From Ruditapes philippinarum (lineage: Eukaryota), in assembly GCF_026571515.1 (NCBI RefSeq), contig NW_026855927.1, positions 1 to 64,000 on the forward strand: 64,000 bases of DNA, given 5' to 3'. The translations under genes and the position numbers were made by a program. The notes below the pieces were generated by a model that saw nothing but the letters and a program-made list of their open reading frames with translations, made no database searches and was not told where the DNA came from. Positions 585 to 21,347 of this stretch are shown here, in pieces. The first letter of the stretch is position 1. Every line of letters starts with the position of its first letter.

Positions 585-2122
585 TTAGCTTTCTTGTCTT
601 CTAGAACGTCGACGAATCAGTGTTTCGTAAAGGCTTAAATCTTTATTTTCACCAGTTCTCCTCCGTCGATTAAACTCTTCTAAACTTCCGACTCCAATTC
701 CGTTAGCGACACCCGCAGATAAGCCCCCATCCCGACACATAGGACTGCCGCCACAAAATCCACCCATGTAGGGAAATCCACGAGTCCCACCTCTGGCTCC
801 TATATAACCTTCACGAATACCGCCACGATCACGTTGACCTTGACGATCTAATCCTTCCTGCTGTGCTTCCGGTCTCTGGCGTCTTGGCCTTTGTACTCTT
901 TCTCGCGGACTTCCAGCTGTCCTTGGCTGACCAAATCTGTTATCAGACATTCTTGGTTGAAATGATGTATCCACGATGGTGTTTTCGTAATTCTGTGGAG
1001 GGTTGACATCATATGACTGAGTACCAGTATCATATATCGGGTCGTAAGTCTGAGCTCCGTTTGGATTTATTTGATCTACCGGCATACCACCTCGAGGTTC
1101 TCGTGAAGCATCGTTACCAGAAATGCCATACCCTATAATGACAGCATTGATTAGGTGTTTGTTTGCTTTACAATATATACCTCTTTAAAAAGTACCTAAC
1201 TTTTGTAACGACAATTTTCATTGGATAGGCATGATGTTTATATAGTCTATATTCACGGCAGCAGTAAATTTAGGAAGTAAATTAAATATTCTTTCCTCAA
1301 ATAAAGCAAATCTGCAGTATAAATTCGTTATAAATATTTATGCCCATTAATGACATTATGCCCATCCAAGGATATATAGTGAATAAACAGGTGGAAACAA
1401 ATGTTGGTCAATAACCCTTTTAACAGTCAATCTTTTGAAATAATAGTCATTTCAGCTCAACTTAACAATGACAAAATAAGCACAATGTCACTTAAATGAA
1501 CTTCAAGTTCGCCTTTTCGAATTAAGTTAAATTTCTCTTTTTTTTAAAAAAAATATGGATGGTTACACAGTTCTTTTCTAAATTGAATATTGTTGATTTT
1601 AATATGGTTAGACAACTGTCATTTTCTCACAATATAGCCGTGTAATTCTAAATGATTTCTTAAATATGTATTTTCTTTTTTTAGAAATAAAGGTATATAA
1701 AAGATTAGTTGTAAATGTAATTATTTTAGCTGTTATGTAATTCTCATATAATTACCTTGCTCTAAATAAGGTTGGCGAGTCATTCTCCTTCCGTGTACCG
1801 CTTGTGTAGGGTATCCATGTTCCGGAGAGATAGCACCCTGAACGTTTTGATATAATCTATGGCTTGAGGGCATCATTCTAGGATCATAATTATTATATTC
1901 ATAGTTTGGAAACATGAATTCTGCTTGACCATGACCGTATCCAGTATGCAAAGGTCTGAAACCATTGTCTTGGCTATAGACCAGGTGGCTGGGGTGACTG
2001 AGTAAATAATCCGGTACATGGCTCCTATGTCCATGTAGTATTCCAGGTAGGGGTGGTAAATGGTAGTCGTGTCCTTTACTGGTTTGTACAAGTACAAGAA
2101 GAATTCCCAAGAAGCGAGTCAT
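585..2122 (-). CDS. Secreted low-complexity His/Tyr/Pro/Gly/Arg-rich protein (gene A), two coding exons join(1756..2122, 585..1132), 304 aa
   Basis: ORF 1733..2122 begins with a signal-peptide-like MTRFLGILLVLVQTSKG. The donor CAAG|GTAAT at 1756/1755 is phase 1. The acceptor TCATTATAG|GG at 1133/1132 restores the frame (GYGISGNDASREPRGG) into ORF 585..1085, and 367+548=915 nt. An acceptor TTTCTAG| at 2129 precedes the ATG. The upstream exon was not located. Confidence 0.85.
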
Positions 2123-8468: not shown

Positions 8469-8771
8469 TTAGTGGTTTGGGAATGGGTACCATCCTCTTC
8501 CGTTTCTATCTATGCCGTCAGCATGCCTTTCTCCAATTCCAGCCCCTCCCCATACTGGCAGCCCATTTCTTCCACCTGTGCCGCCAAAGAAATCTTGACT
8601 ACCTATGCTCCCTCCGCGGCTTCTGCCAAAACCGCTGCCAGAAAATCCTCTTTGGAATTGCATCGGGTACTGGAATCCTCCCGGGTAAATGGTTTGAAAT
8701 GGATATTGTGCTTTTGTCACGGTGATACACACTGTCAGCAAACAGCAACATATTGTTATTGGGAACTTCAT
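8469..8771 (-). CDS. Secreted Gly/aromatic-rich peptide (gene B), 100 aa
   Basis: The acceptor TTTTTATTTTTCAG|A directly precedes the ATG at 8771. Signal peptide MKFPITICCCLLTVCITVTKA, mature QYPF...WGGAGIGERHADGID...PNH. GC-rich island, with AATAAA downstream at 8105-8110 (minus strand). Confidence 0.88.
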   Translation of the reverse strand: MKFPITICCCLLTVCITVTKAQYPFQTIYPGGFQYPMQFQRGFSGSGFGRSRGGSIGSQDFFGGTGGRNGLPVWGGAGIGERHADGIDRNGRGWYPFPNH

Positions 8772-11493: not shown

Positions 11494-11646
11494 NNNNNNN
11501 NNNNNNNNNNNNNNNNNNNNNNNNNNNNNNNNNNNNNNNNNNNNNNNNNNNNNNNNNNNNNNNNNNNNNNNNNNNNNNNNNNNNNNNNNNNNNNNNNNNN
11601 NNNNNNNNNNNNNNNNNNNNNNNNNNNNNNNNNNNNNNNNNNNNNN
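11494..11646. other. Assembly gap
   Basis: N run. Confidence 1.
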
Positions 11647-12150: not shown

Positions 12151-14754
12151 AAACTGAAATAAACCTTTCATTTATGACATTTTGTTACGAATGATCAGTG
12201 GGCGAAACTCATTACAAGTTTTCATTAGGCCTGTCATTGGGCCTTATAAGAATACGCTTTCAATTAACAACCATTACGCATGTCCATATGTTTACATTTG
12301 ACAATATACATGTCTGTAATTAAAACTTGTAATATATGGCGGATGTAATTAATGTTTATTTCTGTTATACAAACGCCAGAGAAAGAGCAAGCAGACGATA
12401 ATGACGAGTGTCAAAATATCACATATTACCCATAAATCATTGCAGGTGTTATGTTAATAGTAGACAATGACCAAATGAACTGATGACTTTACTTATGGTC
12501 ATTATACATGCTGACAGGACATTCCTTTAGGTAGTTTGACCTCTGTCCTTGATCCAGGATTGTCTTAATTATGTTCCTGATTTAGGAGAGATTATGGTTT
12601 ACTTTTCCAATATCATTGGAGAAGCTACGACATGTTATATGTAAGACAATCTTTAATTTATCCGACTATAACATATAACATTGTGTATCATCTTCAAAAT
12701 CATTTCGTTTTAAATAGTAATACATTTTATTTCAGATTAAAGCGTTGGACGTCATTCCCCCCTTTGAAAAGATTATACGGCTTTAGTTTTGTCCAGGGTA
12801 TGTGTGGCAACATGATAAAACATAATAAGTATATAAATAATGTAGTTATTATTCCTTAATGTATACATTAACTTAATGTAAAGAGATGTTCACAATATTT
12901 AATAGGAAAAAAACTAAGTCATCGAAACACTATTTGGTTTGCAGCGTAGGTCAAACCTTGACATCGTATACTGGTGTCTCATATTTCCGTGGTACTTAAC
13001 TGTTTAACACAGACAACAAAAGTTAGGAAAATAAAACTTTGGAAAATATGTTGAATATTGTAGGAAAGACATGTCAATTACATCATAGTTTATACCATTT
13101 AATTGTTACGTATAAGCAATTATGTACACAACATTGCAACTAACACCCATCTGCTGCCTAGTTAGTAAAGTTGTGTTCTTGTATTTCTAAGGCAATTACA
13201 TTTTAAGAGTTTCAAAAGCAAAACCTATAGTTATCTTTATTTTTTAGTATATCTATACCTAGCCTCGTCTGAAAGTGGGGATTTTCTATAAGGCATTTAT
13301 CAAATATCTTAATGGTTGTTTAACAAAGACAATATACGAAAAGTAAAATTAAAATTGTGAAATAATTAACTTTGCTCTTAATCTGAATAAAATAATATGT
13401 TTTCTCAGTCCTATATGTAACATTTTGATAAAATAAATAAAAAAAAGAAAAAGTTAAACTCCTGACAGGTGCATGGCGTCTAGGAGGCATTTGAGGCTGT
13501 TTATGCCTAATACCTTGGAATTATTAGTACCTCGGAAATATGAGGCACCAGTATACCCATTTTGTGTATTCATACTTTTGTGTTTGAGATCAATATCAGA
13601 AGTTTGAAGGAAATGGCCTAGAAGTTGCGATTGAGGACCTCAAACTAATAAACAGACCGAATACGGTATAATATAGTAAAAAGTACCACCACTAGACAAC
13701 TGCATCCAAGCAAGTTTTCACGACCGTGTGGTCTAACTAGTTTATATACTGTTGGTTACTCAATTTTAACCCTTACGACGCTAAATGTATTAAATGTATT
13801 TGTCCATTTATTTTTTAAATATACAAAACCATTCAACAGTTTTTGGGATTTTTTTTGCTTACAGTGTAGACCATGTTCAGTCAAAACGAATGCAGTTTCA
13901 TTTATTATCATATACCAGCAATAAGACAGTAACGTTTCTAAAGAAATTTCACATGAAGAAACACATATACGTTTACCAAGATCAGTTTTCCTTGTTCAAC
14001 ACCAATTATATTGCTCGTGGTGTGACGTCATGAATGTACTGAATGTACATTTATGTAATATGTAAAATAATTCTTTTGGTTTTGTTCACATTTCCATAAG
14101 TCAATCTACAGACGGTACAGTAACAAGAAACAACATCACTTGTTACGTTGGTTACGCGAAGTTGTATTCGCAAGCGGTGTGTGAACAAATAGAAATGGGA
14201 GCAAAACCTATCTATTACCAGCAGTACTTGGCTCGTTCTATTAAAACTTAGGCGTTTATTTCTATAAAATGATGTACTTTTTTAGACCATTTTCATGACT
14301 AAATAAGACATTAACTTCTGGTATGATTATAATGGGAAATAGAAAAATGATAGAGAAAATTGTACAGTTAAAAGCTATTTTAGCAGTAAGCACGACATAA
14401 TACATGTATGATATAATAAACACACAAAAATACATCACAAAACGAGATTGTCAACAGATGATGAATTCTAATTAATATTGTCCATTCATCTGAAATATAA
14501 AGAAATAAAAGATGAATGAGTATAATAAAACAGTATGATAATTGTAATTATATAAATAATAATGCCACTTGTTTTGGACTTTTTTTAAACAACTCTCATT
14601 CTTATCTTACAGAATAAATAAATAAATGAACCATTCTTAAAAAAAGGCAAACATGATATTTAAAACGTTTAAATAATTGTTTAAGATGCTTAAAACCTAA
14701 AGAAAGTAGCGCTGAATGTGAGATTATTTGTAATTAAAGTAGCGACATTTAAAC

Positions 14755-15262
14755 AATGTAGTATTTTGACTTCCATTCAAAATACTAAATCACGAGATTT
14801 TCATAACTACCGAAATGCAACTAGAGCAAAAGGTAGTTCAGGTAATTGGCAAATAAAAACCGTTTTGGAAACTTTATCACGACACAAAAAAAGAAAAAAG
14901 CTTTTGAGAACTGTAAGTAAAAGCTTTTCTACGGTTTCATGGACCTTTAATCTAAACAATATTAATATTATTTATTTCATGCTTTCCAGTGTTTTACTGT
15001 AATTTATCAGATGATTATATTCTGATTAACCACTAGTGAAATTTATAAAATATACAAAGTAATATTTTGACTTCCATACAAAATACTTAATCACTATGAC
15101 TATACTTATTGGTAAAACGTGACATACGCATAAATGGTTCAGGAAATTGGCCATTGAGTAATTTTCTGACATTATAACAGATAAAAAACAAACAAACAAA
15201 AACAAAAAAACAACATGAGAAATTAAAAATAAAAGGAATTCTTAGGCATAATGGGCCTTTAA
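14755..15262. repeat. Old diverged tandem duplication, about 300-bp period
   Basis: TATTTTGACTTCCAT.CAAAATACT.AATCAC, GTTCAGG.AATTGGC and GG.CCTTTAA each recur about 300 bp apart. Confidence 0.7.
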
Positions 15263-15685
15263 AGTTAATTATAATTGTTAGTCAAAAGGTGGGGGTTTTA
15301 TGAAAAGAAGCATTCTCTCACACTCAAACATACAACATTCTCTTCCATAAGAAAACCTTCTTACACGTAAATTCTGCATAAATAGATTTGTTATATGATC
15401 ATTATGAGTATTTTACGACTTCATGTAAGCAGACGACAAACCATTTGACATGTTTATTTCCTTTACGCAGAAGGCAAATAAAAATTAATAACATACATTT
15501 ATGATTATCCCCACAATGTAATAAATACCAAAAATAAAAGTACGGTATAGGTTAAATATAACCACCGCTATAGATATTACAAAAAAAAAACTTTATAATC
15601 AGTCATACAAAAAAGAGCCGAAATAACATTCGATAACCTATTTATTTCTAAATCATATGAATCTACTTTTGCTAAAACTTGCACC

Positions 15686-16034
15686 TTAAAGGGACTTCAC
15701 TGAAGACTTTTGACATAAAGATACTGTAAATCTTTTTTCGAGATTAATGTTCTATTTGTTGAAGATCTAGACCATTAACTTGTGTGCAAAATTTAGACCA
15801 TTTGCTCTCTCAGTTTTTCCATAATAATTGTTCTTTATTGTGAAAAAATGGCACAAAATCCACCCAAATCGTGCTAAGAAGAAGAGCTTAATACGATTTT
15901 CAAGCTATTAATTAGTATTGTACTACATTGACTACATTAATTATCTTTCTGTTTTAAGTGGCCCAGCTGATCTTTGTCAAAGTTCATTTTTAGGTTCCTT
16001 TTTAGGGTCTTGGACCTCAGGGGAGTTCCTTTAG
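15686..16034. mobile_element. Possible decayed TTAA-type MITE
   Basis: Left end TTAAAGGGACTTCACTGA versus the reverse complement of the right end CTAAAGGAACTCCCCTGA. Confidence 0.45.
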
Positions 16035-16392
16035 TGAATATTAATATGTAGCATAATATAGCATGATCCTGGTCAATTTTTAAAGTCGTTTTGCATTTTA
16101 ATTAAATAATATAATAAAATTTGTGCATTAAAAACTTAAATATGCGTCTGTCAAATACGGTATGTCACAAACAAACTATTTATGAACAATCTATGTAATG
16201 TACAATACCTATCTGATGCAAAAAAAATACTAATATTCAAAACCCCTTTCACCTTTGCTAAGTTTTTAAACCGTTTTCCATCACATTTCAATCGGCAAAA
16301 ACTCTTTTCTGATTTGCAGTATTTGAGGAGAAAAAAAAATGTGTTTTAAAGTAATGCTAATTTACTCATCATTGTGTCATATAAAAATGAAT

Positions 16393-16629
16393 TGAGCCGC
16401 GTCACGACAAAACCAACATAATGGGTTTGCGACCAGCATGGATCCAGACCAGCCTGCGCATCCGCGCAGTCTGATCAGGATCCATGCTGTTCGCTATCAG
16501 TTTCTCTACTTGTTATAGGGTTTGTAAGCGAACAGCATGGATAATGATCAGACTGCGAGGATGCGCAGGCTGGTCTGGATCCATGCTGGTCGCAAACCCA
16601 TTATGTTGGTTTTGTCGTAACGCGACCCA
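16393..16629. mobile_element. Foldback MITE, second copy of the 6061 family
   Basis: Near-identical to 6061-6297, with long inverted arms. Confidence 0.9.
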
Positions 16630-16942
16630 ATTGTTATTTATACACAATAAAACAGTATTACTGATGTTGTAATCCTGTAACAACGCGGTGAGAGCGTTCA
16701 ATTCCTCTTTTAGAACTTGGAGGTACATTCATATATAGTGATCTGTTTGGCATTAGAACTGCTAGTGTAGAATTTTGTTCTTTTTATTCTAACCTTTTCA
16801 AAAAGATAAGAACAACAAATGTACATGTAAGTATTTACAAATTACAAAAAAAAAATACAAAAAAACAAGACAACTAAAATGATTACTTTTATGATATACA
16901 GAAAGACGACTTACATTTTTATTGTATCCCCTGAGGAAATGA

Positions 16943-17128
16943 CTAGTGTCTTATACCATCGGCGTACATCTCTCCTGCCCCTGCGCCACCATAAGTACCA
17001 ACCCAACTTCCCATATACCCTTGGTCTCCTCCGATAAAGTCCAAAGGTGGTGGACCATCAAAGAAATACGGCGGCTGGGCAGACACCATACATATCATTA
17101 GGACGCACAAAACAAACACCAACTTCAT
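16943..17128 (-). CDS. Secreted acidic Gly-rich peptide (gene C), 61 aa
   Basis: Acceptor TTTTCATGTTAACAG|TTATG at 17131. Signal MKLVFVLCVLMICMVSA, mature QPPYFFDGPPPLDFIGGDQGYMGSWVGTYGGAGAGEMYADGIRH. Clear paralogue of gene D, with AATAAA downstream. Confidence 0.9.
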   Translation of the reverse strand: MKLVFVLCVLMICMVSAQPPYFFDGPPPLDFIGGDQGYMGSWVGTYGGAGAGEMYADGIRH

Positions 17129-18469
17129 AACTGTTAACATGAAAATAGAAAATCATGTCAGTTTGTGGTTAAGGGACACTGGCAAAGTTTCATGCTTTAG
17201 ATTCTACACTTCCCCTTACTTTGTGTCGGAATGATACACAGAACAGGCAGGCAGATGAATGCATGGATAATTTTTTGAATCTGATATCTTGCACAAAGAT
17301 GTTCTTAGTAAGAAAAAAAGGAAAATTGTGATTATTTTATTTTTTATTTCAAGCAAGTAGAAACGATATATACAGGTTCCTTTCCTTTTATTGTTGAAAA
17401 AAGGAATCCCAAAAATAATAAAATGTAGACTGGAATAAAACAAAATCATTGCCATAGTCTTTGGTTTACCAAGTGAACTTTTTTATGAAAATAGAAGAAA
17501 CTTATCTTGTTCATCTTCTTGCCATCAATATTTAAAAAGTGTTTTTATACTTAACAAAATAGAACGAAACAAAAGCAATATCATAAAAGAAAAAATACGC
17601 TTGCATGTACATGTCAATATACATGTTTTGTGCGACGAATCAACATATAAATGGTCTTATGCGTGTCTGTTTGTCCATGTTTAGTTTCTAGTGACACAAT
17701 TAATTTATCTTTTAAGTTTATGTTTGTTGTAGAAAATGTGCGTAAAACCATTTCCTTATTTCATTTATATGAGATACATCAAAGTAAAACTTTTTTGTAA
17801 GACACAGGTTTGTTTTGCCCAGTTTAAACAAGTAAACCTGTGCTTGTACTCTTGACCAAATGTGACACAAAAATCTCTTACAAAAGAACGAATTTAAAAA
17901 TGTGCTTAATCAGCAATATTTTTGATACAAAAATGAAATTTTGTTTAAGATTACAAAAATAAATTACGATTTCTATTTTTTCAATGATATTAAAAAGAAA
18001 ATGGTCAATGTTTAAAAATCTTTGTGAGCCTAAAAATGTGCGGATTTCAGTTAATATTCTCTCTCAATATTTTTGTTTAAGCGAAACGTTACTAAGATCA
18101 GACGAGATTGTACTTTATTGCATATTCTATTAGTGGCATCGTATTTATTGCATTATTTATAGCTTATTAAATTTTCAAAATCTTATACTTTTGTTAATGA
18201 AGATAACACAAAATTAATTACAACGTGTCTTTGTAAAGTTATAGATTAGTTTGTTTCAAGTTTGGCCTTGAAAACGAAAGTCTTTTTCTATAAAATTCTT
18301 ACAGATATCTTTTCAAAGCGAAATGATTGCATGACCTGTAAAAAATACCGACGCACAGCCATCAATATCGCTTTGAAATTTAAAAAAAATAGTGTTCATG
18401 TAATTCACTTCCTGTGATAATTAAATCATACCTTTACATCCTGAAAAATTTGATATAAATTTTACATAC

Positions 18470-18620
18470 CTTTTCTTGTATTAAGATGCTGCCGAAAAAC
18501 ACCCAGCCGCAAAGAACACGCGAATATTCTGAAGTAAAGCCCGTGATTACAAAAGAAGCCGTAGATCTTGGTGCATCGTCCGTGCTAAATTAATCATCGG
18601 CTTTTAACGCATCACGTAAT
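18470..18620 (-). promoter_or_regulatory. Non-coding first exon and core promoter of gene C
   Basis: Donor AAAG|GTATGT at 18470/18469. TATA-like GTTAAAAGCC at 18599-18608 is preceded by ATTACGTGAT. Alignable with 21204-21347. Confidence 0.65.
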
Positions 18621-19852
18621 ATGTGTTCAACATAAACCGCGTATGTAAGTCTCTCCCCTTACATAATATTCTCCTAATTTATTGAGTCCAACTGCAAAAC
18701 CTGAACTTATATCAAATGATAGAGAAAATTAGGAACAATGTTTTGAAAACCTTTTATATAACTACAAAATAAATATACATGGTTTTAAAATCTGGAAAAA
18801 GGGTGATCCCTCACAGCAAAATAACATGAAAATTGCAGACTTGGTGTGGTTGAGTCTATGAAAAAGTGCAAAATCCCTCATACTGGTTTGAGCGGTACTC
18901 AATTTCAGGTTTTGAAGTGCTGGAATCAATTATCCTGAAAGACCTTGACTGGAATAATGTAATGGTTATATTTCGCAACCACTTTTTTCTGAATTGAAGA
19001 CGCCTTTATAGTTATTTGGGTGTAACCTGATTTACTTGTATATCAATTCAGTTAAAATCTCAATATTTTCCAAAGCTTCACATAAATTAATGTTCCGTGT
19101 ATCGGCTGCTTGATATAGTCGAAATGAGTTCGGAACGTTTTTTTTATAACTAAAACTTTAAATTGTTTTTTCTTCTTTAATTTTGGATTTAATATATACA
19201 TTATGACATTTAGCTCATATTGAGCAAATGCCGATTACTTTTTAATTAATATATACTTAGATATCGATATTGAATTGAAAACAAGTTGTCACCTTTCACA
19301 GTTTTATTAAAACATATACATGACAATACACGTGCTGGTTGTCATAACACATCCGTGGAAGCAAAACGGCGTCTGTAAATATTAATTTTATTTATATATT
19401 CATTTCTAGGCAGACAACAATTAGATCTAGATCATGTTTTAAAATACAATTATTTTCAGAGTCCCTTTCAAATATTTGTAATCGTTTACTAGGTTAAATA
19501 ACGCCTCATACAAACGCGCGCACGCACGCACACACGAAAAAACGTACCATCATGTTATCATTTTATTGTTATCTTTACATTCCACTTTGAAATATATGTT
19601 TACCAATATTTTACATACGAACACATGATCTTAATGTTGATCATTTTACCATAGTTTCAATACAAGTTGAAATACTTATTTCTTTTAAAATGTTTTGAAA
19701 ATAATATGTTTTGTAACCTCTACTTTACAGGACTTCTATCAATACAATACATGCTGTTAAAAAACACTTTTATTAACATAATTTTTAGTATTCATACTTT
19801 TACTGCAAAATTTAGCAAACCAAAACTTACATTGTGAAGATGTTCGATGAGC

Positions 19853-20086
19853 TTAATGTGGATGAAAATGTCCATGAGATGCATGGTACTCTCTAGTCCC
19901 CGGCGGTCCTTCTCCGTCAGCAAACATTGGTCCGGCTCCCGCCCCTCCGTATCGCCCTACCCAACGACCCATGTAACCTGGGTACCCTCCTAATAGATAT
20001 AAACGAGGGGGTCGACGATACATGTAAGGTCGTTGGGCAAACGCCACAACTAACATCAGAGCGCCGAGCAGAAATAGCAGCTTCAT
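19853..20086 (-). CDS. Secreted basic Gly/Tyr/Arg-rich peptide with His-rich tail (gene D), 77 aa
   Basis: Acceptor TTATTTTGTAG|AAACTATG at 20092. Signal MKLLFLLGALMLVVAFA, mature QRPYMYRR...YGGAGAGPMFADG...HASHGHFHPH. AATAAA near 19769. Confidence 0.92.
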   Translation of the reverse strand: MKLLFLLGALMLVVAFAQRPYMYRRPPRLYLLGGYPGYMGRWVGRYGGAGAGPMFADGEGPPGTREYHASHGHFHPH

Positions 20087-20580
20087 AGTTTCTACAAAAT
20101 AATCATGGATTCATCAAACATACAATGTTATAGATTGTTCTGCAATGTCATAGATTGTTCTGAGCAAAAAGCACATTCATAGTTTCTAGAATGTAATTTA
20201 TTATGAGTTAAACAATCATAAAATATAATCGACTGTTCGGGACAAAAATAGCAGCTTCATAGTTTCTACAAAAAAATCATGGATTCGATAATCATACAAT
20301 AAAATCGTTTGTTCTGAACAAAAAGCAGATTCATAGTTTCTACAAAGTAATAATGGATTCATCATACAAAATTATCGATTGTTCGGATCAAAAATAGCAG
20401 ATTCATAGTTTCTAGAAAGTAATTAATTATGGATTTCTCAATCATACAATATTATTGATTGTTTTGAGCAAAAATTACAATCATAGTTTCTAGAAAATAA
20501 TTAATTATAGATTTATCAATCATACAATATTATCTATTGTTCGAAGCAAAAACAGCAGTTTGATAGTTTCTATAAAATCA
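20066..20580 (-). repeat. Tandem repeat of about 75 bp (about 7 copies) built from the gene D splice acceptor and start codon
   Basis: The unit core AAAT/AAGCAG.TTCATAGTTTCTA[CG]AA recurs near 20071, 20166, 20246, 20320, 20392, 20471 and 20549. Confidence 0.9.
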
Positions 20581-21203
20581 ATACAAGTATAATCAATTTT
20601 TTGGAGAAAATATATGTGGAATATGCATAGATGGAGACAAGAAAATGCTAAGTACTCTAATTCATATATATAAATTAAATTATTTTAAATGTATATTAAT
20701 GATAAATTATACTGAACATGATATATTCATTGAAAAACTAAGACATACTGCATATTTTCCATTACTGATAATGATAATGTAAAATAAATGAAGTTTGGCT
20801 AAATTATCTTGCTGATGGCAAAATGTTTAGGATAAGGTGCATTAAAACACGACACATTTTAATTTCACGGTCTTGTACATAGTTTGAACCTATACGTTGC
20901 TAACAACATCAAAATTAAATAAATAAAACTGTGATACATAATACAAAATGCGAAACGTAAACGCCGCTTAAAAAAGTGACAAACTGGTCCGGTGTTTAGA
21001 GCACGTATAGTCAGTGTAATAAATTTAATAAGATTGATAGCCCCCTATCTCACAGACGTAGAAAAAACGTACATTACAACTGACATGCAATTTATTGTGC
21101 AACTGAAAAAATAAAAAAAGATGCAAAATAAATCAAAATTTTAAGCATGTTACATGAGTAGCAATATTTTTATGCATTAGAACATGTACCAACAATAACT
21201 TAC

Positions 21204-21347
21204 GTTTTCTGTATTGAAGGCCACCAGTTACCGCGGAGCTCCAACACGCACGGACGACGTCTGAGCAAAATCTGACTTACACAGCTGTACCATGTATACT
21301 GTACATCTCATTTTGATTATTAAAGGCTTTTAACTGATCACGAAAAT
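21204..21347 (-). promoter_or_regulatory. Non-coding first exon and core promoter of gene D
   Basis: Donor AAAC|GTAAGT at 21204/21203. GTTAAAAGCC at 21325-21334 is preceded by ATTTTCGTGAT. Shares blocks with the gene C first exon. Confidence 0.65.

Follow-up and report, generated by a model that had tools for sequence, protein, structure and literature searches.

We analysed a 64,000-nucleotide stretch of Ruditapes philippinarum DNA (NCBI RefSeq assembly GCF_026571515.1, contig NW_026855927.1, positions 1 to 64,000 of the forward strand; hereafter the window), and in particular two genes on its minus strand, C (coding sequence 16943..17128) and D (19853..20086), which encode small peptides of opposite charge. 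With moderate confidence, we favour the view that C and D are functional, anciently duplicated members of an undescribed family of disordered secreted peptides, which have diverged in charge and in the place or time of their expression and do not form an obligate 1:1 pair. The original prediction, made from the sequence between 16943 and 20086, had described an acidic and a basic peptide built on one scaffold, and had proposed that they arose by duplication as either a two-component co-assembling system or a cationic effector with its anionic neutraliser. Our results partly support this interpretation: the duplication and the conserved charge split hold, while the data lend no support to a functional pairing and mildly contradict it. 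The window, which lies on contig C4414 of a 1.4-Gb genome, is AT-rich eukaryotic DNA (G+C content of 32%).

Gene C encodes 61 amino acids including the signal peptide (stop codon at 16943-16945) and represents an acidic, tail-less subtype, recognised from its open reading frame (ORF), from RNA and from its orthologue P0008. Gene D encodes 77 amino acids (stop codon at 19853-19855) and represents a basic, His-tailed subtype, recognised from its ORF, from RNA and from the orthologues P0002 (Mactra antiquata) and P0005. The ORF of C could open at 17140, and the start of the RNA exon at approximately 17130-17132 places the start codon at the ATG at 17128. In both products, a hydrophobic signal sequence comes first and closes with a site of the A-x-A type, after which the next residue is Gln. 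With cleavage sites assigned through the -3/-1 rule, not a predictor, here and in all family members, cleavage falls after VSA in C and after AFA in D, and leaves Gln-first mature peptides of 44 and 60 residues, respectively. Mature C contains five D/E, one R and one H (net charge -4, isoelectric point (pI) 4.1), mature D contains seven R, three D/E and five H (net charge +4, pI 9.9), and both are Cys-free, Gly/Pro/aromatic sequences. They align without gaps, with identity at 26 of the first 41 residues and with the Gly/Pro/aromatic scaffold retained; C lacks all six Arg residues present in the aligned part of D, and four of its acidic residues are replaced in D. The alignment and a recount thus confirm, as it was written, what the original prediction had observed of the two peptides. 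Charge is altered in nine of the 15 columns in which C and D differ, and all nine alterations make D more positive (p = 0.004 in both a sign test and a swap randomisation), a direct D-to-R reversal occurring at one position only.

Both C and D are real, transcribed and spliced genes. Logan contigs from two runs of different studies (X1 and X2) cover exactly the C and D exons, and part of the window is present in fifteen RNA-like runs from eight studies. All exons are read from the minus strand. The first exon of D (21204..21265, its 5' limit approximate) contains 5' untranslated region (5'UTR) only and ends at the donor AAC/GTAAGT; it is followed by an intron of 1112 nt (20092..21203, GT..AG), whose joint, 20091 to 21204, is read in the contigs of X1 and X2, with 41 letters (X2) or 62 letters (X1) past the joint before the adapter. 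Exon 2 of D (19831..20091), covered exactly by contigs in both data sets, opens at a TAG acceptor five bases before the ATG, holds the whole coding sequence and ends at the donor AAT/GTAAGT 22 nt past the stop codon; with just 5-9 letters known from the RNA contigs, the 3' exon of D could not be placed. Similarly, exon 2 of C (16915..17130) extends from a CAG acceptor two bases before the ATG, through the whole coding sequence, to the donor AAT/GTAAGT 28 nt past the stop codon. The corresponding RNA contig (16924-17132, depth 477 in X1) begins two to four bases ahead of the ATG, at the CAG acceptor, and leaves the last 9 nt of the exon unaligned, which is best explained by a 6-nt insertion in the expressed allele just before the donor. 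A non-canonical junction at 16924, where the contig breaks, was rejected in view of this insertion allele, the canonical donor at 16915 and the third exon at 14489. Downstream, an intron of approximately 2.4 kb in the 3'UTR (14490..16914) separates exon 2 from exon 3 (14240..14489, its lower limit approximate), which carries AATAAA near 14260; here a polypyrimidine tract and a CAG acceptor precede the letters of the RNA contig, the loose end of the X1 contig resuming after the acceptor at 14489. The 5'UTR exon of C could not be placed from the 7 letters that the RNA contig holds ahead of the adapter.

Besides the 6-nt insertion before the donor, the expressed C allele differs from the window by two synonymous changes and by the replacements D13A and D18E in the mature peptide (D18E and D13A at window positions 17024 and 17040), and the allele carrying both replacements was seen in both RNA data sets. 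The net charge of C is polymorphic, being -4 in the assembly and -3 in the expressed allele. We considered whether C is a decaying pseudogene and rejected this, since it has an intact ORF and abundant, spliced RNA, and P0008 shares 34 of the 44 mature residues (~77%).

The non-coding parts of the locus carry several repeats. A sequence at 16388-16781, inside the 3'UTR intron of C, resembles a short interspersed nuclear element (SINE): its word depth exceeds 100,000 in all four runs, raw reads from both strands, numbering in the tens of thousands, cover it, with many variant letters and inverted or back-joined reads, and its translation surfaced as a spurious protein match (P0017). Tandem Repeats Finder reported a degenerate array at 20123-20578, wholly within intron 1 of D, with a period of 78 nt and 2.8 copies plus a 20-nt doublet; its units resemble the acceptor/start-codon region of D, and the RNA contigs use the acceptor at 20091 only. 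Between C and D, the segment 18752-18948 has both-strand coverage in all runs and many variant letters, does not scale with the depth of C or D, and is probably another dispersed repeat.

The origin of the pair by duplication, as originally proposed, is borne out by protein similarity within the window (tblastn, E = 3e-20) and by saturated synonymous divergence (pS 0.83 over 58 aligned codons, 0.97 in the mature part), the nonsynonymous divergence (dN) being 0.27. A blastn comparison of the C locus with the D locus, coding part included, detected no similarity. Saturation of the synonymous sites, along with the lack of nucleotide similarity, indicates that the duplication is old, and C and D are true paralogues. 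The low nonsynonymous value is accompanied by retention of the Gly/Pro/aromatic scaffold, which is held by purifying selection. The synonymous sites of C and D differ beyond what saturation predicts: among the 23 identical residues that allow a codon choice (16955-17077 versus 19913-20035), only two use the same codon, with 6.9 expected at even usage. This excess may reflect differing codon preference.

To define the family to which C and D belong, we used a word search, then a profile of four sequences, applied both in a further word search and in a full HMMER scan of 1.8 billion representatives. The first word search returned a single relative for D, a hypothetical protein of Mactra antiquata, and none for C; the profile word search and the HMMER scan recovered proteins of the D type, the C type and a third, B type. 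The latter is named after gene B (8469..8771, minus strand; 100 amino acids, acceptor one base before the ATG), which lies 8 kb downstream of C on the same strand and represents a widely conserved type with the relatives P0004, P0006, P0007, P0011-P0014 and P0016. Mactra antiquata and Dreissena polymorpha, both bivalves, supply the nearest relatives of the window proteins; relatives also occur in further assemblies, and the family is one of heterodont bivalves. Within the present genome, the genome-wide profile search recognised D (E = 1.9e-15) and C (E = 4.4e-15), and full membership is limited to B, C and D. The core GGAGxG is invariant in 18 sequences (alignments A2 and A3) and is followed by aromatic-A/S-D/N/E-G; the mature parts (44-87 residues) are rich in Gly, Pro and aromatic residues and contain no Cys. 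Gln is the first mature residue, at the assigned cleavage sites, in 13 of the 14 signal-bearing members, including C (VSA/Q) and D (AFA/Q). In the tree, the B members form a clade apart from C+D with a support of 99/100, with no firm branching order within C+D. In Mactra, a B-type and a D-type gene carry the consecutive locus tags 005053 and 005054 on one contig; hence, the cluster is syntenic.

Searches for known relatives of this family were negative. Pfam scans of C, D, B, the neighbouring gene A, two Dreissena members and the ORFs of a further contig, C964 (described below), gave nothing above noise; a sequence-profile search of the PDB gave no matches at E values up to 10; a search of the ESM Atlas with B and the C964 repeat protein returned only sub-threshold compositional look-alikes; and a full-text literature search, by core, tail and repeat motifs and by the named accessions, yielded no paper relevant to the family. 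A resemblance to the Rebers-Riddiford chitin-binding motif was dropped, as the spacing differs and Pfam gives no match. AlphaFold2 supplied with the family alignments modelled mature D and B with a predicted local distance difference test score (pLDDT) below 60, disordered outside the signal peptide; from these models of D and B, the mature C and D peptides are predicted to be intrinsically disordered. Collectively, C, D and B belong to an undescribed family of small, secreted, Cys-free peptides of heterodont bivalves, a family that is new and yet familiar in kind, as one of the lineage-restricted secreted disordered peptides.

The original prediction had asked whether the charge dichotomy holds in orthologues. 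It does within close orthologues: the D type is basic in all three species (+4, +4 and +5), and the C type is acidic in both cases, namely in the window (-4; expressed allele -3) and in P0008 (-3). A more distant, short-tailed relative, P0009, is basic (+3). The B-type charges range from 0 to +6, and P0016 from Dreissena, which falls within the B clade, has a net charge of -6, so that the whole family spans -6 to +6. The D type has five conserved basic positions and an almost invariant tail, ADGEGPPGTRxYHASHGHFHxH. As for the acidic residues of C, E36 and D40 are ancestral to the whole family, and D7 and D/E18 are conserved and specific to the C type. On sequence grounds, then, the dichotomy is maintained within each subtype, the charge 'mirror' is in part ancestral acidity combined with a gain of Arg in the D lineage, and acidity arose at least twice in the family.

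Opposite charges that are directional and conserved, borne on a common scaffold under purifying selection, are what would be expected if acidic C were secreted together with basic D, or with another basic protein carrying the core, and the two condensed by charge, aided by the GGAGxG/aromatic core, in the manner of the complex coacervation of tubeworm cement. Dreissena independently offers another acidic/basic couple (P0016 and P0007), and the core is present in a strongly cationic repeat protein (see below); both observations point in the same direction. However, the RNA data argue against it. In X1, the depth of C is 477 and that of D is 11.7, and in X2 the values are 4.3 (C, with an unspliced 5' end) and 203 (D), so that the abundance of the two is reciprocal by approximately 40-fold each way between these two data sets. 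Neither C nor D was seen in approximately 4-6% of the reads sampled from X21 and X23, two deep RNA-seq runs of the species. This suggests that C and D are reciprocally regulated, which is at odds with a stoichiometric pair, on the basis of two data sets from coded tissues. Moreover, mature C, with five acidic residues and one Ser in 44 residues, has a low charge density, and one expressed C allele has lost a further acidic residue (D13A). At the salt concentration of seawater, charges of +/-4 give rise to only weak electrostatic attraction, which counts against co-assembly of C and D. A prediction of the complex of mature D with mature C gave 'no answer' (score 0.00), which speaks neither for nor against binding.

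The sabellariid cement, invoked in the original prediction as a precedent, offers a useful comparison. Its proteins Pc/Sa-1 and -2 are basic, Pc/Sa-3 is a polyphosphoserine polyanion, and the oppositely charged proteins come from two cell types, a precedent that speaks for co-assembly, the partners being made in one gland (PMC12621633). Like C and D, it comprises secreted, low-complexity, Gly/Tyr/His-rich basic proteins beside an acidic partner. However, the charge of its polyanion results from massive Ser phosphorylation, whereas C, with its single Ser and its net charge of -4, falls far below the charge density of the polyphosphoserine cement proteins; also, C and D are paralogues and the cement partners are not, and the abundance of C and D is reciprocal between X1 and X2. 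By composition, C and D are not a coacervate pair of the sabellariid type. Given the reciprocal abundance and the low charge density of C, the two-component co-assembly that had been proposed was not borne out, and we regard it as distinctly improbable.

The alternative proposal, according to which D would serve in host defence as a cationic, Pro/Arg-rich and His-tailed peptide and C would be either an anionic neutraliser acting on it in trans or an inactive decoy, draws on the N-terminal arm of D (RRPPR, PRLY) and its pI of 9.9, which resemble those of proline-rich antimicrobial peptides. Repeated motifs of the Pro-Arg-Pro type are typical of such peptides; D has one RRPPR stretch and C has none. 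A close comparison is with the myticalins and modiocalins of Mytilida. In myticalin genes, exon 1 consists of 5'UTR alone, the first intron immediately precedes the ATG, and exon 2 encodes the signal and mature peptide; the mature peptide is followed by a conserved Lys-Arg site and by an anionic C-terminal extension of 35-75 residues that is partly encoded on exon 3 (PMC5577615). Like them, C and D are bivalve-restricted, linear, Cys-free and secreted, with cationic members rich in Pro, Arg and aromatic residues, and the three-exon layout of D (exon 1 of 5'UTR only, joint 20091 to 21204, ATG at 20086) matches theirs, a resemblance of layout only. Unlike myticalins, neither C, D nor their orthologues have a KR or other conserved dibasic site; the tail of D is His-rich, 22 residues long and uncleaved, and C has no tail; the second intron lies after the stop codon in both genes, whereas in myticalins it interrupts the coding sequence in phase 1; the signal peptides depart from the myticalin consensus, and the host lineage is heterodont. 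Lacking both the Lys-Arg site and a cleaved anionic extension, C and D are not myticalins. Additionally, conservation within the D type is highest in the non-cationic core and tail, not in the cationic arm, and the core is kept from Dreissena to Mactra, whereas the mature region of myticalins is hypervariable. The reciprocal expression of C and D in X1 and X2 speaks against C acting as a neutraliser, so that the effector-neutraliser couple likewise found no support, and this explanation as a whole seems to us rather improbable; a host-defence function in general is unlikely.

The genome-wide profile search gave, besides the family members, two marginal matches on contig C964, which correspond to two tandem genes with a GGAGIGE core (G000:C964:215364-218432, L008, and 224916-227975, L007). 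One of them was described exon by exon. Its first coding exon encodes a signal peptide, Gln and an FGG-rich stretch, and ends at a GTAAGG donor; the second opens with the exact B-type core GGAGIGERHSNGL, followed by Gly/Met/His repeats of the form (GGGMHGGH)n and then by a long Pro/Lys repeat region of the PKKP type. The neighbouring ORF also has the core. This large predicted secreted protein, of the 390-amino-acid class, has no match in Pfam or in the literature. A splice acceptor lies 1-8 nt ahead of the start codon in B, C, D and the C964 gene according to the sequence, and for C and D also according to the RNA contigs. The small peptides would thus seem to be equivalent to the N-terminal module found in at least one large secreted protein, which is of low complexity and looks structural. 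A B-type core heading a repeat protein shifts our guess toward a module of secreted material.

The same observation bears on another explanation, namely that the family comprises secreted signalling peptides, hormone- or pheromone-like ligands, with C and D differing in receptor or tissue specificity. The conserved N-terminal Gln, a short linear motif kept over deep divergence without a predicted fold, and the small size and synteny of the family would suit such ligands. However, the family alignment contains no conserved convertase sites and no amidation signal, the mature peptides of 44-87 residues are Gly/Pro/aromatic-rich, and the head of a repeat protein of the 390-amino-acid class is not a ligand-like context. 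We consider this explanation unlikely, and a signalling function of C and D no less so.

Hence, with charge divergence, separate 5'UTR exons and reciprocal regulation, functional divergence of C and D is likelier than an obligate 1:1 pair. In the account that we propose, the layout common to the family comprises a signal peptide, an N-terminal Gln that is probably cyclised to pyroglutamate, a variable Pro/aromatic arm, the GGAGxG core, aromatic-A/S-D/N-G and a subtype tail. After duplication, the two lineages would have diverged in charge, each then keeping its own, and each of C and D would have its own 5'UTR exon. The D type has a cationic Arg/Pro/Tyr arm along with an almost invariant, His-rich tail, which resembles a metal-binding site and may bind metals; the C type would have shed this tail together with its basic residues and gained two conserved acidic positions. 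Possibly, the peptides act as short assembly or matrix modules of secreted extracellular material, a tentative assignment that we nevertheless place ahead of the other functions considered; under it, the partners, surfaces or metals with which each peptide interacts would depend on its charge and on the His tail. Gly/His/Tyr/Ala-rich, disordered secreted sequences are known from the flanks of byssal preCols, the His-rich proteins of Nereis jaw and squid beak, and the Gly/Tyr-rich nematode NLP/CNC peptides, and His clusters in such structural proteins may bind metals or drive condensation in response to pH. The likeness of C and D to these proteins is one of composition only, as C and D are single, short, one-core peptides and not repeat proteins.

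Several points weigh against functional divergence within a disordered matrix-like family. Matrix and defence peptides seldom show conservation as deep as that of the core from Dreissena to Mactra, which would be more in line with a receptor ligand, and the Arg/Pro-rich arm of D also fits a proline-rich antimicrobial peptide. The matches on C964 are marginal by E-value (0.03), though the motif is exact, and the different context of C and D expression rests on two data sets only. Furthermore, with the acidic P0016 (-6) standing beside the basic P0007 (+2) independently in Dreissena, acid/base pairs could themselves have been selected. In its strongest form, such couples would be selected and recurrent, C with D (or with the Lys-rich, core-bearing repeat protein) and P0016 with P0007, and the GGAGxG/aromatic core would serve as a heterotypic docking motif; we give this little credence. 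If true, it would describe a duplication-born, self-recognising two-component biomaterial, in which oppositely charged carriers co-condense into secreted material.

The surroundings of C and D contain further genes of similar character. The first ORF of gene A (1733-2122, minus strand) encodes a signal peptide followed by a His/Tyr/Pro/Gly-rich sequence, without a Pfam match; together with B, C and D, it brings to four the number of secreted low-complexity genes that this strand carries within 20 kb. A JGI/IMG metagenome contig of 3174 nt encodes a copy of gene B that differs by a single residue in the overlap and is filed as a metagenome hypothetical protein (P0003), which suggests bivalve host DNA inside a metagenome assembly. 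Runs of N occur in the window at 11494-11646 and at two other places.

The family is at present an uncharacterised orphan, with a function that we infer. It is compact, syntenic and lineage-restricted, with a short glycine-rich core frozen across deep bivalve divergence and a charge that swings from -6 to +6, and it constitutes a clean natural experiment on the charge tuning of a disordered secreted module. It also supplies three or more easily synthesised peptides for assays of metal binding, condensation and antimicrobial activity. If the core is indeed an assembly motif common to large repeat proteins, it would represent a new building block for molluscan biomaterials.

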